From IMG/VR virus record IMGVR_UViG_3300027573_000779, positions 124,001 to 188,000 of that record: DNA of 64,000 nucleotides. One strand, 5' to 3'. Below the pieces are notes generated by a model, which was not told the origin of the DNA, did not search any database, and worked only from the letters and a program-made list of their open reading frames with translations. Each line of letters opens with the position of its first letter. The first letter of the stretch is position 1. Below, piece by piece: positions 1-17,376 of the stretch. The translations under genes and the position numbers were made by a program.

Positions 1-2
1 TG

Positions 3-3000
3 CCAAACTTTGCAAAAGCTCCGCAATTTTCTCAACTTCAATTAAAAGAAATTTTGGGCGGCTCAACTGAAGCTAGAAAAGCTGTTTTCCAAGACAGTCA
101 ATTTGTTTTAAAATACGGAAAATCTTCTGGTCACGCTATAAATGAATTTGTTTCAAATAGATTATTTAATGCTTTTGGCGAAAACGTGCCCGAAGCTCAA
201 TTAATTGACACTCCTCAAGGTAAAGCCTTTCTGTCTAAATTCATCCAAAGTCAATCTTTTGGAGAACTGTATGATAAAGGAGATATTAATACAAGACAAA
301 GATTAATTCAAGGAGTTAAACCTTCTTTTGCGGCTCATGCGGCCTTTGCTAATTGGGACGCATTTGGCGATTGGAATCCAGCAGGAGCCAATGTAAGACT
401 AGATTCAAATAATAGACAGTTTTTTGTGGACTTGGGTGGGGCTTTAGCTTATAGAGGTTTGGGCGCACCTAAACCCAATTTTGGTCCAGAAGTGCCCGAA
501 CTGCGTTCTCTTATTGATTATGCATCTAATCCTTATGCTAAAGCCGCTTTTAAATTTCAACCAGAAGAGCTAAAATCTAATGTTGCCGATTTTCTAAAAA
601 GAACTCCGTCAAATTTAAGCGGTTTGTTAGAGTCTTTAAATAGTGAAACCCAAGGGGACCCACATATCACTAAAGCACTAAAACAAATTCCTAATCGTTT
701 AAATTATCTTAGAAACTTTATTAAATCCAAAGGTTCTATCCCAAATTTCGCGTTCTTTTCAGGAATAGCTTCTGTCGCGCAATCACTTACAGGAGCTAAA
801 AAACTTCCAAAACAAAACATTCGTGCTAACATTACTCCCGAAGAAATGGAGGCAATCTATTTTAATTACGCTAAAACCATTTATAATCCTCAAAAAGGAA
901 AAATCCCAGTAGGTTTAAATTATTTTGCGAACAAGGCTTTCAATTCCGCGATGTTTGAACATCAAGGCTCTTATGTTTTTGGTTCTCACGATAACGAGTT
1001 GTTCCTTCCAACTCACTTTGCTCCAAAAAGCTTAAAGGGCGGATTTGCGGCGCAAAAAGCATTAAGTGAATATTCTAATGTAATGTATGCCGTAACTCAG
1101 GAAATGACCCCAATGCTAGAAAGACTTGGGTTCAGTGTGGCTAAATCTGGAGTTAAAGTTCCCTTCAGGGGCGGAACTGCATTAAAAGACTTTTTGGTTT
1201 CTGATAAACTGCGAACCCCAATGTTTCTTACCAATTTCCTTTCTCAAATGAAACAGGGAGCGGGTTCTAAATACGTTAAACAATATTTAACAAGAGAAGA
1301 CCAAGCTAAATTTAGTCATTATTATCCTTATGGTGGGGGAACTCCGGGCGAAGATGAAGCTATTGAATACTTAAGAAACAGAGGAATTACAGCTAATCAG
1401 GGCAAAATTCCTTCGTCTAATGCGTATTTAAAAGCTAAGTTAACGCACGTCCCCAATTTTGCTCTTCTTGACTCTCTTAGGAGTTTAATTGATGTTCAAA
1501 ACAATAAGTTTTTGGGTTCGAAATTACCCAATACACTTGGAGAAATTTACCCTGTTATAAGGGACCAATTTCCTAAAATAGGACCAATCTTAAAGGGAAT
1601 TAACCCTAGATTACTACTAGATGATATTAATGTTGATAGTGGGACATTATATCGAGGTTTTGCTAGAGCTGTGCGCTCAAAAACATATGACGGTCCTTTT
1701 AGAGCATATGACAGTCCTATTAAACCCTCCGAAACCGTCACAGGTGAACTTGACTTTTTATATAACTTTACGCACGCTTTAAATAGAGGCCAACCGTTAA
1801 AATTCCAAAAAGCCTCGCTAGAAGCCCTGTTCCAAATTGGCGCTCAAGCAAAACAAGAAGGGATAACTGATAAAGTAGGTATCAATACAAATAGCGACCC
1901 ATTTTTTAGAAACCTCGGAAACCCGCAACAACATAGAGATTTTGCACGAAACTTTTTAAATTTAGATAAATCAAAACCCAATCAATCCTTTATTCAAAAA
2001 TATGTAAACAAAATTTTTGACAGAAACAATATAGATGCTGATGAAAACCATATTTCAAAAAACATTGATGTAGGAAACAACACATTGCGTTTATATATTG
2101 AAAAAGAAAGAGGTGACATAAGGTTTTCGTCAAATGGAAGTTTTCATTCTTTAACTGGAGCGGGCGCGTTTTCAACCATGAAAGCTTTAACGCCCGCGTT
2201 AAGAATTATGTTGTGGGGCGCAAGCAAACTAAATCCTAACTTAAAATTTAACTTTAAAGGAGTTTATGGAGACGAAAAAACAGCCTATACCCGTCAAAAG
2301 TTATATTTAAGACAATTAAAAAAGGCCGGAATTCCATTTGAAGGAGGAGTTCATGATACAGCCTATTTTAGTTTTCCAAAAGGAAGTAGTTACAAAAATA
2401 AAGGTAATATTCCCAACTTTGCGGACCCTTTAATTGAGGCTGTTAATAGAGAAATTGCCGCTGGTGTTAATCCTAAGCTTATTAAAGTGGGCCGCCACCC
2501 AAATTTGCGCTCAAGTGAAAATCCCCTAGGATTAGGAGTTTATAATAAGCGCGATGAACCTTCAGGTCTTTATCAAGGTATTTCAAGGGCTATTAGAGAA
2601 GGAATGAATCCTAGAACTTATGGAATGAAGTTCAAAGGAAAGCTGCCAAATTTTGCCCCTAAAGGTGCAGGAGCCGAAAGGGTTCTTCAAGAAGCATCAA
2701 TTAACGAAGGAAGCATAAATACTATTATGGCTCGCTTCCGTGAATTGTCTAGCGCTATTGCCAACTCAACAATTCCATTAAGCCAATTAAGTGCCGCCGC
2801 TCAAACCGTTGCAGCTACAATGCAATCACTTTCTAAAGGACTTGGTTTAACTGAAGAACAAACAAAGAGATTTAGTCAATCAATCGGAGACTCACTAAAA
2901 AGAACTGTCAGTGATGAACAAAATAGACGTAAAGCCGCCGCTGAACCTATTTACTCGTCTGTAGATATTTCAGACAGAAAAAGAGTTAATGCTGCCAGAA

Positions 3001-6000
3001 GAGCGGAAGAAAGAGCTAAAAAAAGAGCAGAAGAAGAGGGATATCTTATTAGACAAGCTGAGGCTTCGGAAAACCGAAGAGAACAAAGAAGATTGGGCAA
3101 CAAAGCTGTTATTTATCCAAGTGGAACTACAACAGAAAATACAAGAACAAGATTAACTCAACCTCCCCTTGAATTTCGTCAAAGGACCTTTAATCCTCTA
3201 GAAAGACAAATAGCTAGAGAAGTGGCTGCAAAACCATTTACATTAGCTTTACCTGAAAGAGCTTTAGGTTTTGCTCGTAAATTAGGAGTTTCAGATAGAT
3301 TTTTAACCTCTTCAGAAAACTATAACCTTTTTAGACAAGTTTCAAGACAGGCGGGTCCAGAAGAAAAACAGGCGCTGAAAGGTATTAGAGACCAAAGAAA
3401 CGCAAGTTTCATTAATAAAGCTTTTGCCGTTTCCTTTGCTGCTCCATTAGTCGGAGGAGTAATAACTGAGGCTATTGGACAATCTACCCCTACCCGAAGA
3501 GGGGTTGGAACCGGAGTTCAAACATTAGCTAACGCCGCAAGTTTTGGCGCTATTGGTGCTCAGTTTGGTGGACCTTATGGGGCCGCTGCTGGCGCGGCTG
3601 TGGGTTTAGCATTTGGATTAATTCCCACCTTTAAAGCTTTTAATGATACATTGCCCGATTTAAGTAAGAGGTTGGAAATAGCCACAGAAGGAGCTAATAG
3701 ATTTTCAGAGGGCTTGAATACATTTATTAGCACTGGCGAGAAGTTAAAGTTTTTATACGAGAATCCAACTCCGAATTTAGGACGTGACGTTGCTAGACTT
3801 CAAGCTCAAAGAGCTACATCTTTTACATTGTTACCAATTGATATCCAAAGACGTTTAACGGAAGCCGAAAAGAAAGGCGACACGACAGAAATCGCAAGTA
3901 TTAGCCAAGAAGGACAATTAAGAAATATCCGAGAAGTGAATGGTCTCGCAATTGCAAAAACCTTAGGAACGGCAGTTCAAGAAAAATCTACTGAAGCTAT
4001 GCTTGCGGGTTTAAAAAGCTTTGAAGCGGAAGTTTTAGGTATTACTAACAAACAAGGCGAAACATTCGCTCAATATCTACAAGAAAACAGGGCAGCTTTT
4101 AACCTATTGAAAGGGCAAAACGATGAAAATTCGATAGACAGACTAAACAATGTAATCAAGAACTTTAGTCCAAATCAATATCAAAACATTTTACCAGCGT
4201 TAAATCAAATAGCCGCCGAAGGAACTCCGTTACGTGGACTTTTTGGGAAAAATTCTTTAAAAACCATTACAAATGAAACCTTTGATTTAAACAAGCAGGG
4301 AGCCGAAGCTAGTTTAAGAAACGTTAAAAATGCCAACAGAAATCTAAATTCTTTTGGAGATGCGATTTTTAAAGTTCAAGAAAGACTAATTGATTTTGGA
4401 GGTAGAGTTAATACAGCTACAACTTTATTAGTATCTAATTTAAGGGCCGCTTCAGAACGTTTGGAAATTCTAGCTGAAGGAACACTGGCCCAAAGAGCGC
4501 CATTTATTAGAGAAGAAAATCTCCCGCTAGTTAGAGCGGGACTAAATACGGAAGTTTTACTTGAACAATTTAATAATCAAAGAACAAATATAGCCGCCGC
4601 TAGTCAAAGAGAAATTGCACTATCTATAAGCGATTCCTTAAATAGATTCTTTGAAGGAGCTTTGGATTTAAGCAAGAGTGAAACCGGAGAAGGTAACAAA
4701 ATTATTGATATTCAAAAGCAAACCCAAGACACAACGCGCCAATTGCTTAGAATTGTAGACCAAAACGGACCCGAAGCACTAAACACTAATTTTGATGAAA
4801 TAAGTGATACTTTAAAAACCCAATTACAATCTCTTAATATAGATATTCAAAAAAGCGGATTTGCTTCAAAGTTCCAAAATTTACAACAAGACCTACTTAG
4901 AAACGTTTCTTTTTCGGTTCGCAGAAATAGAACAGAACAAGGAAACCAAGAATCTGTTTTAAGACAAGATATAATTAATAATGCTGTAAACGACTTAATT
5001 AAAGCTCAACAAGAGACCAATTCCAGAGTCCAACAAAGAAATCTATCTTTAGGGGGCGGGATTGAATCAATTTTAAATACAAACTTTCTATCTCAAAGGC
5101 GCGGCTTTGCTTACGAAGAAAACGCGGGAAGAATCCTAGGTAGAAATGATATTATTGGAGCTAACGCTTTAAGACAGGCAGATTTATTAAACTCTTTTAA
5201 TGTCGAAGTTCCTCAAGAGCTTAGAAACCGTATTGGAAGGGGCGCACAGTCAAATCTTCAAAGGGCAGGTATTAGCTTACCTCAAGAAGCTATTGACCAA
5301 ATGATAGAAAATAGGTATCCGCGTGAAGGGACTGACCAAGAAATCCAAAAGGTTATTCTCCAAACTACCAGTTTATACAAAGCTTTAGAAAAGCAATTTA
5401 ATGACCCATTAAAAATTACAAGTCAGGGGATTTCAGAGTTAGTTGCTTTAGCTAAAGGAACGGGTTTAAGAATTACAACCCAAAATACGCCAATTGAAGA
5501 CACTGCTGCGTTTTTCGATAAAAAAACAGAATCTCAAACCGCTCCAACCAAAACGGTCCCAACTCAATTACAAGATGTTGATAGCAGAATAAACACACTA
5601 ACTAAGACGAGTTTAGATATTTTAAACAGGCAAGGAAAACGGACTGATATTATAAACTCAATCCAAAAAGAGCTAAATCAAAGCGAAGATTCTCATCAAG
5701 TTCGTAGTGTTAGTCCGTTTGCTGCTCTTGGTAGAACTAGCGGCCAGTTGACAACGGAACCAACACCAGCTCAAATTACTGCAAAAGCCATACTTTTAGA
5801 AACCAAAAAAGACTTTGATAAAAACCAATTGAGACAAAAAGACTTAGAAAAACAAATCAACGAACTCCGCGAACAAAAAAGAATCTTAGAGTTTCCACAA
5901 GACCCCATCAATCAACTCTTAAATTTCTTTCCTTCACAAAGAGGAAAACTAATTGAAGAAGCCCGAACTCCAATCAATACCGAGGTTCTTGGACCAATCT

Positions 6001-7649
6001 TGCCACCAGAACTAGAACGAGAAAGACTTAAAAATGAAATTCTTGAACTAGCAAAAAGCTTTGGATATTTAACAAACGTTATAACCAAGTTTAGTGGCCG
6101 AATCAACGATATATCAGTTCTTCCTAGAAACAGAAGAGGGGCACAAACTCTTGTTGACACCAGTTTAGGTCAAATTAACGAAAACGAAGAGCCTTTATCA
6201 AGAAGAAGACTGTTTGAAACGGCTGGCGCTGCCGCTGGATTCTGGAATTCAGCCAACGACACTGTTCTAGAATTCCAAAAAACAATAATTGACACTGCTG
6301 AAACTTTTAGAAGTTCATTCAAACAAGCCGCTGGCGACATGATTACAGGCTCTAAGTCTGTGGAAGAAGCTTTTAGGGAAATGGGCCTGAATATTGGTAA
6401 CAGATTCTTGAGTAATGTAGCTGGCAACTCGGTTGACTCACTTTTAGGACTTTTGGGCCAAGCTGGAGGAGGACTTGGCAGCTTCTTTACCACAAAACGG
6501 AACACTGGTGGGCTTATTCAAAAGTTCGCTAAGGGTGGTAGAGTAAAAGGTGGTTCGGGCACTAGAGATGATGTTCCCGCTCTACTAGATGGAGGAGAAT
6601 TTGTAATAACTAAGCGTGCGGCACAAGCTATTGGTTATGAAAAACTTAATAAACTTCAAAAAAGAGCAGAATCAGGCAAATTTAATACTGATGGCGGACC
6701 AAGTGGCGCACCTTCTGAAGTATTAGTGGGTGCTAATTCAGTAAGAATTAATCTCCAAAACGCATTTAAGTATAATGACGCTTACAAGCCAACCAAGGGA
6801 ACTTTGGCTGTTGACCCTAGATTATCTGCCTTTGCGCTGACAGACGATAACAACCCTCAGAATCAAATCAGGGTTGAAAGAGAAGCGGCATTTTATAGTT
6901 ATTTGCAAGCTCGCAAACAATATCATGCGCAAAAAGTTAAAACTTTAAGTGAATACGAGGAACGGCGCAGGGTGCAGGCGGGGATGATTGTTTTCAGTGC
7001 CGCTTTAAGTGGACTTAGCGGCTTTTTAAACTCTAGTGGAAACAGTGGCCAACCTGCATCACATTACAGTGCCTTTGATACCAGTCCTGTAAGTCGCAAT
7101 CCTAGCTTATATCGCTTTGCTTCTGGTGGACCAGTTAGAACACCTAAAGTTCCAGCTTTATTAACTGGGGGCGAGTTTGTGTTCTCTCCTGCCGCAACCA
7201 GAAACATAGGTCTTTCAACCTTGGGTTCGATGAACCAAGTGCGCGGCTATGCCGATGGGGGCTTAGTTTCGCCTTTTGGTAGCGTTACTCAGGTTGGAGA
7301 TAATAGATTAACAGACTATCTCTCCAAGTTAATCATGGTGTCTGAGTCAATCAGAGAAGCTATTGGAGCACAAAAAGGAACGCCGAACGCCAAGCCCCAA
7401 AAGGAAACTTCTCAGGCTATTAATAACAATATCAGTATTTCTATTACTGTTAATAAAGACGGAAGCGTTAAGAGTAATGTCAACAGCGAAAATGGCAAGA
7501 AAAATGATGGAAGCGGCAACAAAGAAGAAAAAGAAACTGAAGAAGAGAAATATAAGAGACTTGCGCGAATGATTGACGGTAAAGTTATGGAAGTCCTAGC
7601 TCGCGAACAAAAACCGGGAGGCGTTCTTTACGACTTGGATTCAAGATAA
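3..7649 (+). CDS. Tape measure protein, 5'-truncated, with N-terminal cargo (effector-like) domains
   Basis: The frame is open from base 3 (PNFAKAPQF...), so the gene starts upstream of the window. It has a long helical Ala/Gln/Leu-rich body, a Gly/Ala hydrophobic stretch (GAIGAQFGGPYGAAAGAAVGLAFG), C-terminal FAxGG...VPALLxGGEFV repeats and a REQKPGGVL end, all typical of siphovirus TMPs. Confidence 0.85.
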   Translation, partial: PNFAKAPQFSQLQLKEILGGSTEARKAVFQDSQFVLKYGKSSGHAINEFVSNRLFNAFGENVPEAQLIDTPQGKAFLSKFIQSQSFGELYDKGDINTRQRLIQGVKPSFAAHAAFANWDAFGDWNPAGANVRLDSNNRQFFVDLGGALAYRGLGAPKPNFGPEVPELRSLIDYASNPYAKAAFKFQPEELKSNVADFLKRTPSNLSGLLESLNSETQGDPHITKALKQIPNRLNYLRNFIKSKGSIPNFAFFSGIASVAQSLTGAKKLPKQNIRANITPEEMEAIYFNYAKTIYNPQKGKIPVGLNYFANKAFNSAMFEHQGSYVFGSHDNELFLPTHFAPKSLKGGFAAQKALSEYSNVMYAVTQEMTPMLERLGFSVAKSGVKVPFRGGTALKDFLVSDKLRTPMFLTNFLSQMKQGAGSKYVKQYLTREDQAKFSHYYPYGGGTPGEDEAIEYLRNRGITANQGKIPSSNAYLKAKLTHVPNFALLDSLRSLIDVQNNKFLGSKLPNTLGEIYPVIRDQFPKIGPILKGINPRLLLDDINVDSGTLYRGFARAVRSKTYDGPFRAYDSPIKPSETVTGELDFLYNFTHALNRGQPLKFQKASLEALFQIGAQAKQEGITDKVGINTNSDPFFRNLGNPQQHRDFARNFLNLDKSKPNQSFIQKYVNKIFDRNNIDADENHISKNIDVGNNTLRLYIEKERGDIRFSSNGSFHSLTGAGAFSTMKALTPALRIMLWGASKLNPNLKFNFKGVYGDEKTAYTRQKLYLRQLKKAGIPFEGGVHDTAYFSFPKGSSYKNKGNIPNFADPLIEAVNREIAAGVNPKLIKVGRHPNLRSSENPLGLGVYNKRDEPSGLYQGISRAIREGMNPRTYGMKFKGKLPNFAPKGAGAERVLQEASINEGSINTIMARFRELSSAIANSTIPLSQLSAAAQTVAATMQSLSKGLGLTEEQTKRFSQSIGDSLKRTVSDEQNRRKAAAEPIYSSVDISDRKRVNAARRAEERAKKRAEEEGYLIRQAEASENRREQRRLGNKAVIYPSGTTTENTRTRLTQPPLEFRQRTFNPLERQIAREVAAKPFTLALPERALGFARKLGVSDRFLTSSENYNLFRQVSRQAGPEEKQALKGIRDQRNASFINKAFAVSFAAPLVGGVITEAIGQSTPTRRGVGTGVQTLANAASFGAIGAQFGGPYGAAAGAAVGLAFGLIPTFKAFNDTLPDLSKRLEIATEGANRFSEGLNTFISTGEKLKFLYENPTPNLGRDVARLQAQRATSFTLLPIDIQRRLTEAEKKGDTTEIASISQEGQLRNIREVNGLAIAKTLGTAVQEKSTEAMLAGLKSFEAEVLGITNKQGETFAQYLQENRAAFNLLKGQNDENSIDRLNNVIKNFSPNQYQNILPALNQIAAEGTPLRGLFGKNSLKTITNETFDLNKQGAEASLRNVKNANRNLNSFGDAIFKVQERLIDFGGRVNTATTLLVSNLRAASERLEILAEGTLAQRAPFIREENLPLVRAGLNTEVLLEQFNNQRTNIAAASQREIALSISDSLNRFFEGALDLSKSETGEGNKIIDIQKQTQDTTRQLLRIVDQNGPEALNTNFDEISDTLKTQLQSLNIDIQKSGFASKFQNLQQDLLRNVSFSVRRNRTEQGNQESVLRQDIINNAVNDLIKAQQETNSRVQQRNLSLGGGIESILNTNFLSQRRGFAYEENAGRILGRNDIIGANALRQADLLNSFNVEVPQELRNRIGRGAQSNLQRAGISLPQEAIDQMIENRYPREGTDQEIQKVILQTTSLYKALEKQFNDPLKITSQGISELVALAKGTGLRITTQNTPIEDTAAFFDKKTESQTAPTKTVPTQLQDVDSRINTLTKTSLDILNRQGKRTDIINSIQKELNQSEDSHQVRSVSPFAALGRTSGQLTTEPTPAQITAKAILLETKKDFDKNQLRQKDLEKQINELREQKRILEFPQDPINQLLNFFPSQRGKLIEEARTPINTEVLGPILPPELERERLKNEILELAKSFGYLTNVITKFSGRINDISVLPRNRRGAQTLVDTSLGQINENEEPLSRRRLFETAGAAAGFWNSANDTVLEFQKTIIDTAETFRSSFKQAAGDMITGSKSVEEAFREMGLNIGNRFLSNVAGNSVDSLLGLLGQAGGGLGSFFTTKRNTGGLIQKFAKGGRVKGGSGTRDDVPALLDGGEFVITKRAAQAIGYEKLNKLQKRAESGKFNTDGGPSGAPSEVLVGANSVRINLQNAFKYNDAYKPTKGTLAVDPRLSAFALTDDNNPQNQIRVEREAAFYSYLQARKQYHAQKVKTLSEYEERRRVQAGMIVFSAALSGLSGFLNSSGNSGQPASHYSAFDTSPVSRNPSLYRFASGGPVRTPKVPALLTGGEFVFSPAATRNIGLSTLGSMNQVRGYADGGLVSPFGSVTQVGDNRLTDYLSKLIMVSESIREAIGAQKGTPNAKPQKETSQAINNNISISITVNKDGSVKSNVNSENGKKNDGSGNKEEKETEEEKYKRLARMIDGKVMEVLAREQKPGGVLYDLDSR

Positions 7650-8482
7650 TCAAGACGTTTCTGAAGTTTAATAATTTCCTGTTCAAGCATATGAACAGCT
7701 TGATTATACACAATATCCATAGTGAAGCTGTTTTTGGCCATTGTGGGCAAGTTTAAAACAGGAGTAAAGTCTCTAGAAATAGAATATTCAGTGTTAAAAA
7801 GGGTTGGGCCAGTATAGGGAATATTCAAATAAAGTTGCCATTTAGAACAACTTATATTGATAACTTTAAGTTCTCGCGGCAAAGGAGTTTCAACAATGAT
7901 TTTATTTACTGACGAATTTACTTGAATAATTCTATTGGTTACAGTAGTATATTCATTTAAATAAATAAATGAAACACCAATTTTAGCATTCTTTCCAGTG
8001 CCGCCGCTTAAAAAACATTCCGTAGATGAAGTCATAACATATCTACCTCTGTTTTTTATATTTATTCTTTTGATTTTGCCCTCTTCAACTCCTATTACAT
8101 TTATTTGCGCCGCAACCCCAATTCCGCCTTCTAAAGTCAGCACGTCACCTACTGAATAACCAGTGCCAGCATCCAAAATTGACACTACTGTATCCAATTC
8201 AAGCTCTTTATAAGAAATCTTTATTACATCTTCTACTTGAAGGTGAGGCGCGACTATTTCATTAATCACAATAGTTTGAAGTCCTTCAATAATGCAATTA
8301 TTAAACATAAAAACACATTCTTCCTTTTTATTTATAAAATAGAATGCGTTTTGACTGTTAATAGTTAAATAAGTTCCATCAACAACTTCTCTTAAATCGT
8401 CGCTGGAAGAAACATAGGCAATATGACTACCGTTCAAGATAGACAAACTGCCTCCTTTGATTTTTTTACGTTGAAGTAACAT
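7628..8482 (-). CDS. Probable virion/tail-associated protein
   Basis: 284 aa, directly downstream of the tail fibre. Contains DAGTGYSVGDVLTLEGG and GGTGKNA motifs of the kind seen in phage structural proteins; C-terminal coiled coil. Confidence 0.45.
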   Translation of the reverse strand: MLLQRKKIKGGSLSILNGSHIAYVSSSDDLREVVDGTYLTINSQNAFYFINKKEECVFMFNNCIIEGLQTIVINEIVAPHLQVEDVIKISYKELELDTVVSILDAGTGYSVGDVLTLEGGIGVAAQINVIGVEEGKIKRINIKNRGRYVMTSSTECFLSGGTGKNAKIGVSFIYLNEYTTVTNRIIQVNSSVNKIIVETPLPRELKVINISCSKWQLYLNIPYTGPTLFNTEYSISRDFTPVLNLPTMAKNSFTMDIVYNQAVHMLEQEIIKLQKRLDYLESKS

Positions 8483-8484
8483 TA

Positions 8485-11274
8485 TTAAGCAGGATAATCA
8501 ACTGGATACATCGGCGTGCAGGTCCATTTAGGAACCTGATGGTCAATAATCATACCCGGAGCCTGAGTTAAACCGTCGCCGGTTGAACCAGTGGTAACAT
8601 AACCGGTGCAAAGATAAAGGTAATAAGTGTTGGTATCAAAAGTAGCACCACCACCGTTATAAGTTGCAGGCGAGCCAGCTTTATCAGGAATTCCAGTGCC
8701 AACGCACATCATTCCGGGGAATCCCGGCCTATAACCGTTATACCAAGAAGGAGTGAAAAGGTTGGGTTGGAACACTAAAGCTCCCTCTCTGAGCCACAAA
8801 CCGCCAGAAAAGAACATGTTAATTGAATTGTCATTTCTTGGCTCTCTAACTCCGGTGCCAAGTCTGGCATCAGTAATTATAGTAGTGCCTGTTCTAGTGG
8901 TACTGATATTACGCCCAAACAGAAAAGCGTTTCCAGCTTGAGAACTGCCTGTGATACCACTTCCATGAATTAACATTCCATCGACATTTAAAAGGAAGCA
9001 TCCAGAACCATTAAGGATAGTGTTTTGTTTTCCTCCACTGATGACATTATTTGCGCCCCCTAGGATATGATTGTGCATACCCCTTAAAATGGTATTGTTT
9101 CTTCCTACAAGCACAGAATGAAGAGTCCCGCTGGCTAAAGCAAAGTGGCCGTTTGGAATTGTGGTATAGCTTGAAGCACCATGAACTTTATTAAGTTGTC
9201 CACCTAAAACAGTAGAAGCATAGCTGCCTCCACTGACATGATTTCCAATACCCACTAAAACAGCAGAAGAGTCACTGTTTTCAACAATGTTTTGGTTGCC
9301 TGCGCCGATAAAATTAAATCCAAGAGACGGATTGCCGGTAATTATGTTTAAATAACCCCCAACAATTGCGCTTGAAGAATTTGCGCTACTTACTTTATTC
9401 TCCTGACCGGCTACAATAGTTGACCAGTCAGCGTGAGCTTCATTAGCTTCCCCGCCTAAAATAGCAGCTTGGTCACCGTTAATATAGTTTCTTAAACCCG
9501 CCGCAATAGTAGAGAATTTGGCGTCTGTTGAAATAAAATTGCGCCCACCACCCCCAATGAATGCCCAAGCACTTCTAACAATACCGCTTTCTCCCGCCGC
9601 AATACCAGCAGACCTAACAGTATCGATTCGATTATTATCTCCACCACCAACAAAACTTCGACTACCACTAATTCTATGGTCTCTACCCCCAACAATCGAA
9701 CTATCCGTAGAGGCAGTTAAGGTAATATAGTTACTAGTGCCTCCCCCAATAAACCCCCTATCTCCTGAAAGCCTATGCGAACTACCACCACCAATAAATG
9801 AGTTATCAGCAACAACCAAATTCGCAGTCCCCGCGCCAACTATTGCATTAAGGCCAATGGCTTTATTAAGTTGTCCACCAATTACAGTAGAAAAACGTCC
9901 AGTTGCAAAGTTTGCAAAACCATTAACAACTGTGGAATAATCTCCACTAGACATATTAGTGTCACCATTAACCACCAAACTAAAGTCACCAAAAGTTTGA
10001 TTATTTTCACCCCCAACAATTACTGCATGTTCGTTAGTTCCTGTTCCAGCCGCGTTGTTTAATCCTCCTATAATAACACCATAAGTAGAAGTGGAGACAT
10101 TGTTTTTGCCGCCTCCTATAAAGGACTCAGTAAGCATTACCCTGTTTAAAGTGCCCCCGACAATCGCGCTACCCGAAGTAGTGTCTGCAATTCTGTTTCG
10201 GACGCCTCCACCAATAAAAGCAAAATCGCCAGTAACACTATTACTATGTCCCCCAACAACAGTGTCGTTTTCTCCTAGAACAGTATTAAGTTTGCCCGCG
10301 CCAATAAAATTAAAATCGCTGCTAGCAGGGTCAATAAAGTTATTGCTTCCAGCTACAATCGCCGAGCCTTCAGAATCCAAAATGACATTAGCATAACCAC
10401 CACCAATAAAGCCAGCTAAAGCAGTTGAAAGAGTGTTTCCAGAACCACCAGCAATAACAGCAAGCCTTGAACTTTCAATAATTCCTGTGGCTCCTGCAAC
10501 TACAGCACTAAAATTAGAAGAACTATCTATTTCATTACCAACTCCACCACCAACGAACCCAAAATCTCCTTCATTTGAATTATCTTGTCCGCCCACAATA
10601 GCTGCACTAGGAGCACCTTTAACCAAGTTTCTAACTCCACCACCAACAAAACCGTAGTGCGAACCAGTCACAGTATTGACCTGCCCGCCGCATATTGTAG
10701 CATAATCCGATACAGCAACGTTACAATTTATTCCAACTAAAATTCCAGCATAAACACAGGCTCCTACAATTTTATTGTTGCTTCCAGCCCCAATTATACC
10801 AACTGAAGCTTCGTCAATCCCATTAAAAGTTCCATTAACAACAGCAGAATTGGCTCCAGAAACCACATTGCTTTGTCCACCACCAACAATTGAACGAATA
10901 GCGCCAATAGCAACAGAATTACTTGCTCCTCCTAAAATAGAAGCATAAGTAGCTGAAGGATTGACTAAATTAGTAGTTGCTTGACCACCAATAATGTTTT
11001 TAAAATAACCGCTACCGTTCGGAAGCATAAAAGAGTTGTTAGCGCCAGTAACAATCACATTCCCAGAAAAGATGTTATTAGCAGAATAGGGTTCTCTTAA
11101 CAATCCGTAATCAACAATAGCGCCGCCTCCACCATAACCAAACAAAGTAGAAAGAGTAGTGTTAAAGTTTAAAACGGTCATTTTGTAAGGAAGTCCGTTA
11201 GAAACGATATATATTAAATCGCTTGCCGTTGCGCTTGTCAAACCTGTTAGTTGTGATACCTTATAGTCAGCCAT
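8485..11274 (-). CDS. Tail fibre/adhesin with GGxxN beta-roll repeats (Hep_Hag/YadA-head-like)
   Basis: 929 aa with dozens of ~15-aa repeats of the form S-x-I-x-GG-x-x-N. The N-terminal ADYKVSQLTGLT...DLIYIV segment resembles a fibre attachment motif. Confidence 0.8.
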   Translation of the reverse strand: MADYKVSQLTGLTSATASDLIYIVSNGLPYKMTVLNFNTTLSTLFGYGGGGAIVDYGLLREPYSANNIFSGNVIVTGANNSFMLPNGSGYFKNIIGGQATTNLVNPSATYASILGGASNSVAIGAIRSIVGGGQSNVVSGANSAVVNGTFNGIDEASVGIIGAGSNNKIVGACVYAGILVGINCNVAVSDYATICGGQVNTVTGSHYGFVGGGVRNLVKGAPSAAIVGGQDNSNEGDFGFVGGGVGNEIDSSSNFSAVVAGATGIIESSRLAVIAGGSGNTLSTALAGFIGGGYANVILDSEGSAIVAGSNNFIDPASSDFNFIGAGKLNTVLGENDTVVGGHSNSVTGDFAFIGGGVRNRIADTTSGSAIVGGTLNRVMLTESFIGGGKNNVSTSTYGVIIGGLNNAAGTGTNEHAVIVGGENNQTFGDFSLVVNGDTNMSSGDYSTVVNGFANFATGRFSTVIGGQLNKAIGLNAIVGAGTANLVVADNSFIGGGSSHRLSGDRGFIGGGTSNYITLTASTDSSIVGGRDHRISGSRSFVGGGDNNRIDTVRSAGIAAGESGIVRSAWAFIGGGGRNFISTDAKFSTIAAGLRNYINGDQAAILGGEANEAHADWSTIVAGQENKVSSANSSSAIVGGYLNIITGNPSLGFNFIGAGNQNIVENSDSSAVLVGIGNHVSGGSYASTVLGGQLNKVHGASSYTTIPNGHFALASGTLHSVLVGRNNTILRGMHNHILGGANNVISGGKQNTILNGSGCFLLNVDGMLIHGSGITGSSQAGNAFLFGRNISTTRTGTTIITDARLGTGVREPRNDNSINMFFSGGLWLREGALVFQPNLFTPSWYNGYRPGFPGMMCVGTGIPDKAGSPATYNGGGATFDTNTYYLYLCTGYVTTGSTGDGLTQAPGMIIDHQVPKWTCTPMYPVDYPA

Positions 11275-11304: not shown

Positions 11305-12630
11305 TTATGTCTCAGTTAAAATATATCCACCATTCTCAAGAAGAAGATAGCCTTGTTCGTTTCCAGTTAAATTGTCATACTGTAAATAACCAGTACTAGT
11401 TATTACAGGTTGGTCTATTACTCCGCTTATAAACAGTCCCTTTGAAAGGTCTTTGGGGTCAATTTCAGCCTCAAAAGAGAACCTTGTTGATGCTTGCCCA
11501 TTTAGATTAAGCTGAAAAGTCGAATTTGAATATTTAGCGTTTCTAAAGAAATAATAGATTTGAGGAACATTACTCCGATTTTTAACCGTAATATCCACGT
11601 TATAATTCTTATCCTGAATAAATAATCTCTCTAAAGTGCCGGTAAGCAGGTTTTTAGCAACAATATCAAAGCTTAAATTAACCAAAACAGGGAATTGAAT
11701 TACTCTATCAAGGGGAGATTTATAACCTAATTTAGTCAACGGTGTTCTATCAAGGCCCATTGAAATATCATATCCTTGAATTATTAAATCATTAAAATGA
11801 ACGCCAAAATTAGATTCGCCACTGACTGAAACAGTGATATTCCCCGGCAAAAGAACTGTTTCCAAAGCAAGACTTTCGGTTGGTCTAGGAATACAACATT
11901 TTATGCCGGAATAGTTTCTATAAGTCCTAATATCAATGGCAGGAATTGAAATCCCGCTGCCGCTGGTATAGAACATCATATTTTCCCCTATATAACTTAC
12001 AGAAGTTTGAGGAAATTCCCCAACAGCCGCTGAAGTCCGATAAGAAGTCATGTAACAATTACCAAAGCCAAACGCATCAACATCTAGGTAACCCGCTTTT
12101 CCTGTAGTTTGATTGCTTAAATCTTCTCTATCTTTTTTAATAGCTACAAAGAAGTTGCGACAATCCCTATAGTTAAAAGGCCAATAAAGACCTTCTGCGT
12201 CCGTTTTCCACATCTCGTTTGGATGCCTAACAGTAAGACCAGAAAGCAAAGGAACCGAAAAATTAGCCCCAAAAGCGTTATCTCCTCTTGTGTTACTATA
12301 GTAGTTAATATATAAACCCAAACGAAGTTCGTTTAAAACACCAAAATTATGATAATTGAAGTTAAAATTGACTGTGGGGGCTGTAGTAATACTATCTGAA
12401 GCAACTCCAATTTTGCCAATGTTTAAAATTCTAGTTCTATCAGTGTTAATTTGATAGTCAAAAGACGTGACGCGATGAACCGGAAAAACAATGTTGGTAG
12501 CGCCCGAAACCCCTAGTTGAGAGATATCGCTTTCCAGATATCCCAAAGAATTTAAAATATGATATCCAGTAGCGGGAGCCGGTCCTACAAATAAACCAGC
12601 TAAATTATATGTTATCCGGTTCCGATTCAT
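11305..12630 (-). CDS. Probable tail tube/major tail-type protein
   Basis: Beta-rich ~440 aa protein between portal and tail fibre. The N-terminal RNRITYNLAGLFVGP and internal LGYKSPLDRVIQFPV resemble tail-tube-like proteins of large environmental phages (recalled, not searched). ATG at 12630. Confidence 0.5.
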   Translation of the reverse strand: MNRNRITYNLAGLFVGPAPATGYHILNSLGYLESDISQLGVSGATNIVFPVHRVTSFDYQINTDRTRILNIGKIGVASDSITTAPTVNFNFNYHNFGVLNELRLGLYINYYSNTRGDNAFGANFSVPLLSGLTVRHPNEMWKTDAEGLYWPFNYRDCRNFFVAIKKDREDLSNQTTGKAGYLDVDAFGFGNCYMTSYRTSAAVGEFPQTSVSYIGENMMFYTSGSGISIPAIDIRTYRNYSGIKCCIPRPTESLALETVLLPGNITVSVSGESNFGVHFNDLIIQGYDISMGLDRTPLTKLGYKSPLDRVIQFPVLVNLSFDIVAKNLLTGTLERLFIQDKNYNVDITVKNRSNVPQIYYFFRNAKYSNSTFQLNLNGQASTRFSFEAEIDPKDLSKGLFISGVIDQPVITSTGYLQYDNLTGNEQGYLLLENGGYILTET

Positions 12631-14545
12631 CAACTTTGCTGGCTAACAAAATAGCAGCTTGATAATCATCAATTTGATGTTCACAAGCTAAGTCTAGAAT
12701 TTCCTGAACGCGCTCTGGATTGGTATCAACAGGCTTTTCTAAATATTTTGGTATTGAGTCTAACCAATTTTCGGGTTCTTCGTTGGCAACAATAACCTTT
12801 GTTACCTCTTTAATTAATTCTTCTTGTTGGGAAGTGATTTTTTGGCCTTTTAATTTCTTTTCAACAGCCTCCTTAATTTCTTGATTAACCTGATTAGCTA
12901 GACTAAAATTTTCAATAGTTTTAGACATACTGAAGTTCGCGCCAATTGGCTTTACTTTCTTGGTGCTTTGTTTGCGTTTTGTCCCCTTTGGTCTTCCTCC
13001 CGGTCGAGATACGGGAGCGGGTTTCATAATTTCCTTTTGTTTAGCTAGCTCAAGCTGGTCTGCTGGCCCACCAACAATTGGTTGATAATAACCCTTATCT
13101 TTAAGAGGTTTAAAGGCGGCTTGATTTTCTTCCGAAGACTCTCTGTCAGGCAAAATACCAGTCTCAAAAGCTTCAAAGGCTTCTTCGGGTGTTAAAAGTC
13201 CAAGTTCATAAAGTCTAGTATAAATTTTACTATATTCCAAAGAGTCCTTAAGATTGATATCAGCAAAATTGGGTGTAGGATAGTTTTTAAACCCTAGCAT
13301 TTTGGAAATACGTTTAATTTCGGGAACTAGAAATTCACTTAAAAAAGCTTCGCGCCCCTGTTTCAATCTTTCAATCAAAACCTGAACCTTCATGCTGGTA
13401 TTAGCAAACTTTTCGCCATCCCCAAGTAAAACATTGTTTAACCCAGTTCGAATATCTCTATCAATTGATTCGTACTTCTTGGGGTCCAAGAAACTGGCAA
13501 CATCAGGAAAAATATATTGAGCGTTGGTGGTATAATCTGCAATGAGCACACGACCCACCGATTCATTTTGAAACAAAGCTTGCATTTGGCGCATAGCTTC
13601 CATGTTAGTTCCCCCTTTGTCTGGTTCCGCACCCATAGTGATAAGAAGAATAGCTTGTTGAATTGTTCTAGTTGCTGCCATGTCCATTTTGCGCATCTCG
13701 GCTTTCCAGTTAATATCAGCTAAAACCGGAAAACCCATTGGAACAGCCATTGGTTCATAATCTTGTTTCTTATAAAAAACGGCCACTATTTGTTCAGGGG
13801 AAAGCTCAATAACAATTCGTCCCGCGCCCGTTTCAAGTTCTTTTTTTGTTTTGGCAGGAAGACTGTCATAAAAGGCAATCTCCTCTTCTGTTTGGGGCTT
13901 CTTCAGTCTTTGAATTTCATATGGCGTAAGAACCTTTAAAAATTTTGAAGCAAAAAACGAAATGTTCCCACCTGTTTCAATGTCCGCAGGATTTAAGATA
14001 ATATATCTAGCAGGAAGCTTTGAATCTTCTTCAATCGCGCCAAAAACCTGAGTCATCTTGGTTATATCTTCAGACAAAATTTTAGAATCAATCCTGTAGA
14101 TTATCACGTTGCCAGAACGGTAATACTCTCTAAAAAATCTGTCTTGAAGCGACCACTCGCCAATCTTCTTAAGCCAAGCAGCAAAGAAATCCCGCGCCTT
14201 TTTGTTCCCACCTTTAAATCTGAGTTCGCTACTCGAAAACTCAGTCATAAAGTCAATAGTGTTCCGAAAAATAGAAAAGTTATAATAGGTTTTTTGACAA
14301 AGGATAATGGCCTCTCTGGTATTAACGTTTCCCCCAGTGCTGGAATAGAGAAAAGGGTCTAGACCATTATTTATGTTTGTATAGTTGTCTGTTCTTTCAA
14401 TGGTCCCCGCCCTGTTTCTCCTAGTTGGGCTGGAAGTTGTTGAACTTGAGTCACTTGCGTTTATTTGGATACCATAAACATACTCTCTGTCCTTAACCCC
14501 TTCAATAAATGCATCCCCTTTTTCTTTTTCTTTGGTCTTAGCCAT
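12605..14545 (-). CDS. Portal protein
   Basis: 646 aa, immediately downstream of the large terminase. Contains portal-like segments (FFREYYRSGNVIIYR, PMGFPVLADINWKAEMRKMD) and a basic low-complexity C-terminal region. Confidence 0.75.
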   Translation of the reverse strand: MAKTKEKEKGDAFIEGVKDREYVYGIQINASDSSSTTSSPTRRNRAGTIERTDNYTNINNGLDPFLYSSTGGNVNTREAIILCQKTYYNFSIFRNTIDFMTEFSSSELRFKGGNKKARDFFAAWLKKIGEWSLQDRFFREYYRSGNVIIYRIDSKILSEDITKMTQVFGAIEEDSKLPARYIILNPADIETGGNISFFASKFLKVLTPYEIQRLKKPQTEEEIAFYDSLPAKTKKELETGAGRIVIELSPEQIVAVFYKKQDYEPMAVPMGFPVLADINWKAEMRKMDMAATRTIQQAILLITMGAEPDKGGTNMEAMRQMQALFQNESVGRVLIADYTTNAQYIFPDVASFLDPKKYESIDRDIRTGLNNVLLGDGEKFANTSMKVQVLIERLKQGREAFLSEFLVPEIKRISKMLGFKNYPTPNFADINLKDSLEYSKIYTRLYELGLLTPEEAFEAFETGILPDRESSEENQAAFKPLKDKGYYQPIVGGPADQLELAKQKEIMKPAPVSRPGGRPKGTKRKQSTKKVKPIGANFSMSKTIENFSLANQVNQEIKEAVEKKLKGQKITSQQEELIKEVTKVIVANEEPENWLDSIPKYLEKPVDTNPERVQEILDLACEHQIDDYQAAILLASKVDESEPDNI

Positions 14546-14563
14546 ATATCATAAAAAATTACA

Positions 14564-16441
14564 CTATTTTATCACCATGGGCACAAACATTCCCGTTGGG
14601 CGTTCTACCGGTTGCCTCATTATTTCAAAATAAGCTTTAACTCCCCAACAGCCTAATAGTAAAGCTGTATAACTGTCTTTTCTTGGTCTATCGGCGCTAG
14701 TAATCTTTTTTAAATGAACAGGAACATCAAAAGATTGGGTCCCTTTGGCGGTTATTTTAACTTCTATAAGGGCGCACTCATTTTTAGTTTGTTTAATTAA
14801 GTCATCCTGTCTTTCAATTAACTCAAGAATTTGATTCTGCTCAAAATTTTGACCCTCATCGTTTTTAAGATAGGTTATATCTATTTTTTGAGAACAATAA
14901 TGATTTAACGCAGCTTCGTTTGGTTGCACTTGGGAACCAAAAAACACTTTTTTATGGTCTATACAAGTTTGTAAATGAACGTTGGCGTTTCGAATAAAAT
15001 CACTACTAAAAATCTGTGCAAAAGCTATTTTCCCGCCTCCGTTTTTCTTTTTGTTATATTTCAACCTTGCTTCTCGAAGCATTTCTTCATATTCGCGCCC
15101 CTCCAATTCACTTTTAAAATCAAAAAAAGTAACCTCCAACCCATGAGAATGAAACGTTTCGCTTTCTGTAGCGCTATCCAAAAACTGAAATCCAGCATTA
15201 TCAATAATTATCAACACTATGTTAAAATGACTTAAAACATAAAAAAGATATTTAATGTGGTCTTTAAGGTCTCCACCGGCCACTGCATAAGCATGAACCA
15301 AGGTAGAAGTCTCTGTTTCCTCATCCAGTTCCATAATTGCCATAGCAAAATTGTCGCTTGAGGGGCTATTGGAAAAACTTGGGTCAATTGCTAAAACATA
15401 CTTTTTATCAGGGTCACCCGTTATTTTGGTTGTAGGGTAATCGCCATCAGAAATAGTGCTGGCTAGCATTTTTCTAGCTGAATAATAACCCTCAGAATCA
15501 TCAATAAACTTCGCGCCCCATTCACGTAAAAAGGCAGAATTGGAAACCCCTCCGTTTTTGGCGGCTTCAATAATCTCCTGATTAAGCATCGCTTTGGGAA
15601 TAGCTTCGTAACTAAGCTGAGAAACAAAATAAGTTAAAGCACTCTCTTTTGGAGAATAAATTTCTTCAATAAATTGGCAATATTTCTGATAAAGATATTC
15701 AAAAGTATAGCTGGCAGAAGAAAGGAAAATAACTCTAGCTTCGTTAGTAAAAACCGTTCTGTCTTCCTCTTTCATTGCCCCCGCCGCAATAGCTTCATCT
15801 TCTTCTCTCTCAGTTTTTAAACGTTCTTTAAGACCTTTGTGAACAGAAAGAAATGGAGTTAGAACTGTGTCAATAATTTCCTGAGACATTAACAAAAACT
15901 CATCAACGATAAGAACGTTGGCGCGAAAACCCCGGACCTTTTCTCCGTTAAGAGGGATAGCTTTAATTGATGAAACTTGTCCGTCTGGATAAGTGATTCT
16001 CCATTCGTATAAATCGTTCCTTTTAGCCCGATAACCAAACATTTGCCCAAGAATCTTTCCTTGAGGACTATCAACCAGTTTTTCAAGCTCACTAAAAATA
16101 TGTCTAGCCGTCCTAAAGGTAGGACCGGCAATAATAATTTGAGCGCCGGGATTAAAAAGAGGATATAAAAAACAAAAGATAGCCGCCATTGTGCTTTTGG
16201 AACCACCACGAGTCCAAACGCAAAGACTAAAGTTCCTAATCATCCAAGCTTTTAAAGTCATCTCTTGAAAAGCCTCCAAAGCAAAACCGCAAAGAAACTC
16301 AACCGTCCATCCAATATTATAACGCATGAATTTGGCAAAGCTTACCCTAGCCACTCGGTCATCAAGTTCTCCCTGAAGTTCCATTAGTTCTTGATTAACG
16401 TTTTGAAGAGGACGTTTGTATTTTTCTGGACTATAAATCAT
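14564..16441 (-). CDS. terL: Terminase large subunit
   Basis: Walker A TRGGSKS, Walker B LIVDEF, motif III FLSSAS, RNase H-like nuclease YVLAIDPS and C-terminal KDSYTA. Confidence 0.92.
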   Translation of the reverse strand: MIYSPEKYKRPLQNVNQELMELQGELDDRVARVSFAKFMRYNIGWTVEFLCGFALEAFQEMTLKAWMIRNFSLCVWTRGGSKSTMAAIFCFLYPLFNPGAQIIIAGPTFRTARHIFSELEKLVDSPQGKILGQMFGYRAKRNDLYEWRITYPDGQVSSIKAIPLNGEKVRGFRANVLIVDEFLLMSQEIIDTVLTPFLSVHKGLKERLKTEREEDEAIAAGAMKEEDRTVFTNEARVIFLSSASYTFEYLYQKYCQFIEEIYSPKESALTYFVSQLSYEAIPKAMLNQEIIEAAKNGGVSNSAFLREWGAKFIDDSEGYYSARKMLASTISDGDYPTTKITGDPDKKYVLAIDPSFSNSPSSDNFAMAIMELDEETETSTLVHAYAVAGGDLKDHIKYLFYVLSHFNIVLIIIDNAGFQFLDSATESETFHSHGLEVTFFDFKSELEGREYEEMLREARLKYNKKKNGGGKIAFAQIFSSDFIRNANVHLQTCIDHKKVFFGSQVQPNEAALNHYCSQKIDITYLKNDEGQNFEQNQILELIERQDDLIKQTKNECALIEVKITAKGTQSFDVPVHLKKITSADRPRKDSYTALLLGCWGVKAYFEIMRQPVERPTGMFVPMVIK

Positions 16442-17376
16442 GTTAAACTAAAAGTATTAGTGTCATAAAGAAATTGTAAATCATACTTAAAAAACTCACC
16501 TTCAGAGTAAAAAATCTTGGTTATAATTTGTGAGGCCGTCTCCCTATTATTGACAAAAAGAAATTGGACATTATGAAAATCACGTAAGATATGTCTGACG
16601 TTATGAAAGATAAAGTCAGGTTTAACTGACGAAAATTTACATTGTGGTAGTTTATCAAACTGAAACGCCAAACCAAATCCGCACTCAACAATAACAATTA
16701 CTCTAAAACCAGCTATTCTGGCACGCTCAAACTCTTTATGAACTCGCTCAAAATCGCGGCCAAACGAATTAATAAAATCTGTCAAAGACTTCCTTTCAAA
16801 AACCAAATCAATAGGTTTACCATTTACTAAAAACCCATAATCTCCAACGTTTAATGTTCCAATATGAGCTTCACAATCAAACTTAAGAGGCGTTTGCTCT
16901 CTGGAATCTATAACAATATTGGAAAATAAAGGTTTTTGGGGATTAATTAAAGTAAAGGGGTCCGGCTTTTCAAACCTAACCCTTAAGCCTAAATCATAAC
17001 AAAGCCTATAATAGTCTCCAAAAAGCAAATTATACCCAAAAATTGAGGGGCAATAAAGCGTTCGAAGCTCAACTTGAGAAGGAGCATATAATAGCCCCTT
17101 AACTTGAATTCTTGCTTTTAAAAAATTTAATGCATATTCTTTTAAGACATGTTGGGGCTGGCTGGCATACCACTTTTTAAAGTTCTCTCTGGAATTGAAA
17201 TTTTGAGTAAAATACTGTTCGTAACTTTTATATTTAATAAGCTCGCCGGTTAGTAAATCGCGCCTATCAAAATGTTTGTGATAATAATCTTCTATTTTAA
17301 GCTTATGAGAACGAAGATGACGATGCAGGTCTTCATTGGTTTCAAAAGCTGTTTGACATTCCTTACAATTAACCAT
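16438..17376 (-). CDS. C2H2 zinc finger fused to ERCC4 (XPF/Mus81-type) nuclease
   Basis: CKEC...HLRSH finger; VIDSREQ, GDY and ERKSLTD motifs of ERCC4. The true start is probably the ATG at 17376, which overlaps the upstream stop (GATGGTTAA). Confidence 0.8.
   Translation of the reverse strand: MVNCKECQTAFETNEDLHRHLRSHKLKIEDYYHKHFDRRDLLTGELIKYKSYEQYFTQNFNSRENFKKWYASQPQHVLKEYALNFLKARIQVKGLLYAPSQVELRTLYCPSIFGYNLLFGDYYRLCYDLGLRVRFEKPDPFTLINPQKPLFSNIVIDSREQTPLKFDCEAHIGTLNVGDYGFLVNGKPIDLVFERKSLTDFINSFGRDFERVHKEFERARIAGFRVIVIVECGFGLAFQFDKLPQCKFSSVKPDFIFHNVRHILRDFHNVQFLFVNNRETASQIITKIFYSEGEFFKYDLQFLYDTNTFSLT

Follow-up and report, generated by a model that had tools for sequence, protein, structure and literature searches.

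Exchangeable, unrelated cassettes separated by a conserved peptide junction in the tape measure protein of an uncultivated phage

The DNA analyzed here, a stretch of 64,000 nucleotides (nt) from the virus record IMGVR_UViG_3300027573_000779 and referred to as the window, opens inside a gene whose product is, by its family matches, a phage tail tape measure protein (TMP) of the TP901 type. The TMP consists of three parts: a TP901-type N-core of ~560-700 amino acids (aa), an array of cassettes spanning aa 562-3805, and a C-core of ~1,660 aa. The cassettes are separated by copies of a short motif, which in this protein reads G-x-[IVL]-P-N-F-[A/N]. The motif is a conserved unstructured junction between independently folding, unrelated modules and the exact point at which modules are swapped in related phages. 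We consider it very likely that the protein carries a cassette array built with such swap joints. Our full explanation, in which the array would also be delivered together with the TMP and the motif would be cleaved by a protease, is favored with moderate confidence. Proteolytic processing at the motif, taken separately, has slightly less than an even chance of being right. We regard the protein as a real TMP-borne variant of the phage polyvalent proteins, one that has apparently not been described before.

Translation of window positions 3-7700 gave a single open frame, which was already open at the first base of the window and ended with a stop codon at 7647-7649. The source record has 208,933 bp, and 10 kb of its upstream sequence was included (L001; window nt 1 is L001 nt 9999). 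On this sequence the open reading frame (ORF) covers L001:1241-17647 and encodes 5,468 aa. Its start (L001:1241) precedes the window by 8,758 nt, so that 2,920 residues fall outside the window and the last 47% of the TMP inside it. A previous interpretation of the window (the sequence-only reading) had described a TMP polyprotein with five PNFA copies. These copies are in place (PNFA at 3-14, IPNFA at 738-752, VPNFA at 1449-1463, IPNFA at 2409-2423, and LPNFA at 2643-2657). The extent given to the array had to be corrected, as the ORF reaches 2,920 aa further upstream and the number of junctions is 17, not 5.

The phage is uncultivated, has a genome of ~209 kb, and comes from groundwater and freshwater sediment. 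The identical sequence (window 1-6000, zero differences) was found in one groundwater metagenome and three metagenomes of freshwater sediment from other studies. Contigs from the three freshwater-sediment runs crossed the junctions at 738-752, 1449-1463, 2409-2423, and 2643-2657 without any difference. Since identical, independent contigs span the junctions, the array is not an assembly artefact or a chimera. Cultured phages (INPHARED) showed neither a DNA nor a protein match to the window region.

The assignment as a TMP was supported by two family models, both matching aa 77-405 upstream of the window. TIGR01760 (tape_meas_TP901) scored 127.5 bits at a cut-off of 28.8 (E 5.7e-37) and PF10145 (PhageMin_Tail) scored 97.6 bits at a cut-off of 33.2 (E 1.2e-27). 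The first 600 aa matched annotated TMPs of Bacillus, Lactococcus, and Staphylococcus siphophages. The C-terminus aligned to gpH of phage lambda, with FASGG...GGEFVF...YADGG in the window protein and FATGG...GEFVF...YATGG in gpH; in a phmmer comparison the C-terminal ~100 aa matched PDB chain 8iyk_H with an E value of 0.0085. Together these matches confirmed the protein as a TMP, as the sequence-only reading had proposed, and the C-terminal motifs it had listed were found to start at 6525 (FAKGG), 7116 (FASGG), and 7248 (YADGG). Two stretches of the C-core, aa 4056-4079 and aa 4087-4130, are likely to be the membrane-inserting part, as judged from their composition. At the end of the Gly-rich hydrophobic segment the sequence GLIPTF (window 3620-3632, aa 4125-4130) resembles a degenerate junction motif. 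The ORFs upstream of the TMP gene have the same orientation and no annotatable function, and the window genes downstream of it are convergent (head-decoration-like, TerL). Two ORFs ahead of the TMP gene (L004:9222-9944 and 10001-11014) are putative chaperone genes. In the relatives L005, L012, L013, and L014, minor tail genes (PF05939) come after the TMP gene.

The whole protein contains 14 PNF[AN] sites, all within aa 562-3805 (the P is at aa 562, 898, 936, 944, 1327, 1403, 1540, 1712, 2100, 2921, 3167, 3404, 3724, and 3802); the last 1,663 aa are free of them. With three degenerate versions of the motif (GKVPSFA at 695, GRVPNLA at 1141, and GKIPSFA at 2294), the number of junctions comes to 17. 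By chance a mean of 0.14 and a maximum of 2 copies would be expected, as determined from 2,000 composition-preserving shuffles. The motif is longer than PNFA: Gly occupies position -3 in 13 of the 14 copies, I, V, L, or A stands at -1, and S or A at -5 and K at -4 are frequent. A sixth "PNF" in the window (KPNFG, nt 474) sits within a conserved kinase-like fold and is no junction. The motif was not found in ~51,000 residues of other ORFs from the window, L004, L005, and L007, and a general site for virion maturation, of the prohead-protease type, was regarded as unlikely because the motif is absent from neighboring ORFs. The sole PNFA of the window outside the TMP (13273, minus strand, within ORF 12605-14545, ...YPTPNFADINL...) has neither Gly at -3 nor a hydrophobic residue at -1 and is probably a chance occurrence. 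Structures were predicted for two modules, cassette M10 and one of the HExxH modules described below. On both sides of each, the motif formed a coil with a low predicted local distance difference test (pLDDT) score, disordered and outside the folds. An intein-like or 2A-like element was dropped as an explanation, as the Asn is not followed by a nucleophile and an NPGP is missing.

To place the TMP in a family, HMMER was run with 885 in-window residues as the query. It matched 2,401 proteins, and the family was drawn from the best 150 of these, cluster members, and fetched relatives; members had to exceed 2,000 aa and to carry three or more motif copies. At least 56 TMPs of uncultivated phages share the same plan of a conserved N-core, a variable array bounded by motifs, and a conserved C-core of ~1,600 aa. 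PF10145 was present in the relatives that were checked, and one relative bears the annotation of a TP901-family TMP. The array of these 56 proteins starts at aa 575 (median for the first motif), stops ~1,600 aa short of the C-terminus at the last motif, and is ~300 to 3,200 aa long. The consensus over 386 instances was [GN]-A-[AS]-G-G-[FY]-[IV]-P-N-[FY]-A, in which position -4 is K/R, not G, in the subgroup of the window protein. The residue after [FY] is small (A in 63%, then V, S, and N), and tandem copies 8-30 aa apart are frequent. The 280 motif-to-motif units were sorted into 128 families, with 84 singletons, and 54% of the high-scoring segment pairs (HSPs) between units covered >80% of both partners. 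A homology search with the cargo region gave 4 relatives only.

In relatives derived from metagenome-assembled genomes (MAGs) the junction motif and the C-terminal motif overlap as IPNFAKGG, and the window protein contains FASGRVPNLA. The kinship of PNFA with the C-terminal [FY]AxGG elements, which the sequence-only reading had pointed out, is therefore plausible. The TMP-like ORFs with IPNFAKGG (L015, L016, and L017) lie on contigs binned into MAGs of Flavobacteriaceae and Candidatus Neomarinimicrobiota, and this binning gives a weak hint at hosts.

Exchange at the motif was seen in related phages. The syntenic relative L007 encodes a TMP of 3,351 aa (P0079). What this protein has in common with the window TMP is limited to the N-core, part of one zincin module, the unit M13, and the C-core, and the shared blocks start and stop at motifs. 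In pairs of TMPs such as P0034/P0060, P0089/P0121, P0098/P0131, P0076/P0153, and P0056/P0090 the N-cores are 88-95% identical, yet the cassettes differ, and the alignments end directly after ...PNFA or ...PNF in both partners. Among 166 related pairs, the distance of internal HSP ends to a motif was at most 10 aa in 53% of cases and at most 6 aa in 43%, compared to 4.3% and 2.5% for random positions. The same was seen in DNA. L013 and L014 are 87.6% identical over nt 11-3889, and the homology stops at the Ala codon of GFIPNFA. The stretches that come after this codon, 1,561 nt long in one phage and 757 nt in the other, show no relationship; the homology restarts 10 nt ahead of the following motif and is lost a second time directly behind PNYAA. 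Since breakpoints in protein and DNA coincide at the motif, we conclude that it acts as a swap joint. This supports the module-swap linker of the sequence-only reading and agrees with the test named there, as modules of related TMPs are gained, lost, or replaced exactly at the motif.

The units between junctions in aa 562-3805 measure 8 to 821 aa and include at least 13 cassettes. For most cassettes, here or in relatives, Pfam, PHROGs, and NCBIfam gave no match. The cassettes within the window, M10 to M13, had no significant BLASTP match among each other, in agreement with the earlier statement that the segments are unrelated. That at least one of them is a complete domain was borne out by M10, which adopts a protein-kinase-like fold. 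Alignment of M10 with 33 homologues revealed invariant K, H, E, D, N, and D-x-G-G residues. The AlphaFold2 model (pLDDT 88.7, predicted template modeling score (pTM) 0.88) was matched by Foldseek to CtkA, HipA, and eukaryotic-type kinases with E ~1e-6, and the best TM-score was obtained for CtkA of H. pylori. Pfam gave a weak HipA_C match, and a sequence search of the PDB with a kinase profile gave none. Domains homologous to M10 are part of proteins with 550-1,100 aa, where they are joined to Phage_Mu_F, ADP-ribosyltransferase (ADPrib_exo_Tox), NUDIX, or DUF3626 domains, a fusion context that is classic for phage polyvalent proteins. The same kinase-like module is present in P0002, a giant, Cys-free ENA metagenome protein of 3,416 aa that has no PNF motif. 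P0002 repeats a junction of ~45 aa (…AFKNHPGSHDEQTHTTLFNLANPSQGREG…) six times, at aa 51, 598, 1183, 1804, 2362, and 2904, with intervals of 550-620 aa, and looks like a second multi-module protein family with its own repeated junction.

Cassette M11 had no Pfam, PHROG, or NCBIfam match, and M12 belongs to no recognizable family. The M13-type unit (F0) occurs in 42 relatives, usually as the last unit ahead of the C-core, and its alignment shows invariant R, E, G, and N residues; it had no family match and none in the ESM Atlas. P0055 was rejected as a stand-alone M13 protein, since it stems from a frameshift-fragmented, low-coverage assembly.

Three copies of a module of ~190 aa, with motifs on both sides of each, lie in the part of the array that precedes the window (aa 702-894, 948-1140, and 2104-2293; 32-36% mutual identity). 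The module has an invariant HExGH and a conserved Glu ~25 residues later, and H, E, G, and H are invariant across 7 sequences. The model of the module reached a pLDDT of 75; its fold neighbors were all non-significant but enriched for zincins (ArdC, PprI, PolyVal metallopeptidase, SprT, and IrrE). The HExxH, the conserved Glu, and these non-significant fold matches suggest that the three modules are zincin-like or metallopeptidase-like. A further cassette (aa 1331-1399) is a sigma-70 region-4-like helix-turn-helix. Separately from it, a free-standing sigma-70 region-2-like ORF lies at 18461-19162 (minus strand). None of the hallmark polyvalent Pfam domains (MuF, MPTase-PolyVal, LPD) was found at threshold in the protein; neighbors from LPD families turned up in the ESM Atlas, all at scores below 0.9.

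The explanation we favor is as follows. The cassettes would be ready-made effectors, carried with the TMP in the tail lumen and reaching the host before the DNA does. A site-specific protease would recognize the motif, with [FY]|[A/S/N/V] as the most likely scissile bond, and cleavage would free the cassettes, be it while the tail is assembled or once the TMP has been ejected. The DNA that encodes the conserved motif would also offer short stretches of homology for recombination and so give rise to a combinatorial array.

Several observations are consistent with the proteolytic part of this explanation. That a strongly conserved peptide of 8-11 residues recurs in flexible linkers, between folds that are unrelated, suggests that one common factor recognizes it. 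With its small size, the residue after [FY] fits a P1' position, and as in processed viral polyproteins, conserved short sites lie in flexible linkers between folded domains. The frequent tandem copies and the overlap with the C-terminal motif type in IPNFAKGG likewise count in favor of processing. Both TMPs studied in this respect are processed. The gpH protein of lambda loses a C-terminal piece of ~14 kDa from a Gly-rich region, with neither the site nor the protease known (PMC12617516), and pb2 of T5 is cut after R1127, next to its metallopeptidase motif, which separates the enzymatic domain (PMC10038345, PMC10713586). By our own arithmetic, the ~14-kDa fragment of lambda is estimated to start close to FATGG. 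In the boldest form of the explanation, the TMP would be a programmable string for the delivery, before the DNA, of a dozen or more effectors (a kinase, peptidases, a sigma-like factor, and many of undefined type), which would be freed at a universal PN[FY]|A. This junction would be an elaborated form of the [FY]AxGG beside the gpH/gpH* cut of lambda and would then also reveal what determines TMP processing; we regard this version as rather unlikely.

Delivery of the cassettes into the host cell is suggested by the amino acid composition. The 58 motif-bearing TMPs contain 8 Cys in 182,650 residues and the 5,468-aa window TMP contains none, compared to 1.14% in the other ORFs of the window. As Cys is nearly absent across the whole TMP, the cargo appears to be under the same constraint as the ejected backbone, and from this shared constraint we infer that the cassettes are probably not discarded in the producing cell.

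A number of points weigh against processing and delivery. HExxH was present in just 9 of the 56 relatives; an embedded zincin can therefore not be the general processing enzyme and was rejected as the universal protease, and the HExxH modules may be effectors instead. Their assignment as zincins itself depends on HExxH, a conserved Glu, and non-significant fold matches. No protease gene was recognized near the TMP genes. If all junctions were cut, N-core and C-core would come apart. The motif is absent from cultured phages, and PNF is lacking in the nearest cultured TMPs (Staley and Thrax5). It is also uncertain whether the tail lumen has room for ~3,200 folded cargo residues per chain: by our own estimate, assuming a lumen ~4 nm wide and a tail of ~335 nm, set by 2,230 core residues, three full-length chains would fill about half of the lumen and six would not fit. 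Finally, a binding or structural role explains the conservation of the motif equally well.

Such a role is the most serious rival to proteolytic processing, and we rate it as possible, though with clearly less than even chances. As a short linear motif it would remain uncleaved and serve for docking or as a joint, by binding a common partner (a tail assembly chaperone, the tube lumen, or a hub) or by setting the register of the TMP trimer, so that cassettes could enter the tail in spite of their bulk. The TMP would stay intact. Like binding motifs, the junction is conserved at the protein level, disordered, and exclusive to the TMP, and it is akin to the [FY]AxGG/GEFV elements of ordinary TMP C-termini. 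A universal protease was not found, and an uncut chain keeps the N-core joined to the C-core. The spacing of the copies, however, is irregular (8 to over 1,800 aa) and incompatible with the periodic lattice of a tube. The common occurrence of copies in tandem, 8-30 aa apart, also speaks against docking, and no partner was identified.

A special case of the favored explanation is that the three HExxH modules cut this TMP in cis at the flanking motifs. The motifs that bound each module on both sides, the invariance of H, E, G, and H, and the weak fold neighbors (ArdC, PprI/IrrE, PolyVal MPTase, and SprT peptidases) would fit this, and autoprocessing by embedded zincin metallopeptidases (MPTases) was proposed for polyvalent proteins (PMC5512222). 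The lack of HExxH in 47 of the 56 motif-bearing TMPs and the non-significance of the fold matches argue against it, and peptidases could equally act on host proteins. We consider cis-processing unlikely.

It is improbable that the motif is a recombination signal only, without a role in the protein. The break of L013/L014 DNA homology inside motif codons would agree with such a signal, and several motif copies in L005 share most of 30 nt. Yet synonymous codons differ at every motif copy, in the window TMP and in its relatives, and the amino acids are invariant, within one gene as well as across TMPs that are only 40% identical; a pure DNA signal would show the opposite pattern. The variation of synonymous codons among copies therefore indicates selection on the peptide, not on the DNA, and a DNA-level repeat or RNA element was rejected for the same reason. 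That the feature is unreal (a chance repeat, a misassembled chimeric ORF, or a giant protein other than a TMP) has a negligible probability: the length is unusual and convergent genes instead of tail-tip genes follow in the window, but the shuffles gave only 0.14 copies, identical contigs from other samples span the junctions, the syntenic L007 has the same layout, and TMP family models matched above threshold.

The features of the TMP within the window are compiled in Table 1.

Table 1. Parts of the TMP gene located in the window (positions in nt of the window).
Feature	Position	Strand	Basis or remark
C-terminal 2,548 residues (aa 2921-5468) and stop codon of the 5,468-aa tail TMP	3..7649	+	
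Junction (GKL)PNFA (aa 2918-2924)	3..14	+	first three residues upstream of the window
Cassette M10 (aa 2925-3163), protein-kinase-like domain	15..731	+	alignment, AlphaFold2, Foldseek
Junction GSIPNFA (aa 3164-3170)	732..752	+	low-pLDDT coil in model
Cassette M11 (aa 3171-3400)	753..1442	+	recurs motif-to-motif in other TMPs (family F15)
Junction THVPNFA (aa 3401-3407)	1443..1463	+	sole copy without Gly at -3
Cassette M12 (aa 3408-3720)	1464..2402	+	rare; partial matches only, in P0006 and P0051
Junction GNIPNFA (aa 3721-3727)	2403..2423	+	
Module M13 (aa 3728-3798, family F0), conserved unit of ~70 aa	2424..2636	+	alignment
Junction GKLPNFA (aa 3799-3805)	2637..2657	+	last copy; end of the array
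Conserved C-core of the TMP (aa 3806-5468)	2658..7646	+	homology to the C-termini of relatives; weak match to phrog_934 (tape measure family)
Hydrophobic and Gly-rich stretches of the C-core (aa 4056-4079, 4087-4130)	3408..3632	+	Kyte-Doolittle scan, sequence
C-terminal motif FAKGG...VPALLDGGEFVI	6525..6608	+	
Region aligned to lambda gpH 691-791	6987..7289	+	includes FASGG...GGEFVF (7116-7184) and YADGG (7248-7262)

The rest of the window is phage DNA and includes TerL (14564-16441), an ERCC4 nuclease, the sigma-like ORF mentioned above, and an AAA ATPase. A convergent ORF of 284 aa (7628-8482) overlaps the end of the TMP ORF (7649) by 22 nt and resembles head-decoration proteins. Next to it lies an ORF of 929 aa on the minus strand (8485-11274), also convergent with the TMP gene, with a beta-roll match to PF21300 (E 2e-6). 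The ORF 16438-17448 (minus strand), which adjoins the TerL gene, encodes a C2H2-type zinc finger followed by an ERCC4-type nuclease domain, and the pairing of ERCC4 with TerL is also seen in the relative L007. A homing-endonuclease-like ORF (19701-20708, plus strand) lies amid a long run of minus-strand genes.

In polymorphic toxins such as CdiA (VENN) and Rhs (PxxxxDPxGL) a short peptide marks the border between the constant and the variable part, and in Rhs this is a site of autoproteolysis. As in these toxins, the short motif of the TMP stands at a border between constant and variable sequence and coincides with a recombination breakpoint, which makes them the closest analogue of the swap joint. 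CdiA and Rhs have one C-terminal toxin together with an immunity gene, whereas the cassettes of the TMP are serial and internal, without immunity genes, and convergent structural genes follow. Sle1, from a contractile injection system of actinobacteria, is a reconfigurable effector related to TMPs (PMC13277306, 2026). It shares with the window TMP a TMP-like scaffold that is packaged in the tail tube and has an exchangeable functional domain; it differs in having a single C-terminal domain and in belonging to an injection system, not a phage, and the abstract mentions no junction motif. Sle1 and TMPs with one embedded cell-wall enzyme are partial precedents.

The window TMP resembles lambda gpH, which is processed to gpH* and gpHC (PMC12617516), in being a TMP whose C-terminal region is homologous to gpH 691-791. 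Lambda gpH and T5 pb2, however, are cut once and carry no more than two cell-wall enzymes, located near the C-terminus, unlike the window TMP with its internal array of at least 13 cassettes, its cytoplasm-type domains, and its 17 motif copies. The closest concept is that of the polyvalent proteins of phages and conjugative elements, MuF-anchored multidomain proteins among them, which are giant proteins with many unrelated effector-type domains in shuffled order and which are thought to enter the host with the DNA (PMC5512222). The window protein is like them in its combination of domains, and its kinase-like cassette also occurs in fusions with Phage_Mu_F, ADP-ribosyltransferase, and NUDIX. 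It is unlike them in that the carrier is a tail TMP instead of a head protein and in that one conserved junction motif parts the cassettes. The description of polyvalent proteins by Iyer, Burroughs, Anand, de Souza, and Aravind (2017; PMC5512222) makes no mention of tape measure proteins and contains no account of a junction motif. Neither the motif nor a polyprotein or cassette architecture of TMPs was described in the full-text literature that we searched, the coverage of which is incomplete, so that novelty is not proven.

If this reading is true, the array is a tail-borne counterpart of the polyvalent proteins packaged in phage heads. Cassettes delivered with the TMP would place customizable enzymes and regulators in the cell before any phage gene is expressed, and the 128 families among 280 units would then represent a large and mostly uncharacterized pool of candidate functions for host takeover or anti-defense. 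The junction motif is a simple sequence handle by which such arrays can be found and divided into functional units, and the exact swap points in the DNA show the route by which the arrays diversify. The kinship of the junction to the C-terminal motif of lambda-type proteins provides a testable lead on the mechanism of TMP processing, which is unknown even for lambda. Phages with identical backbones whose TMPs differ by hundreds of residues also challenge the rule that the length of the TMP predicts the length of the tail.

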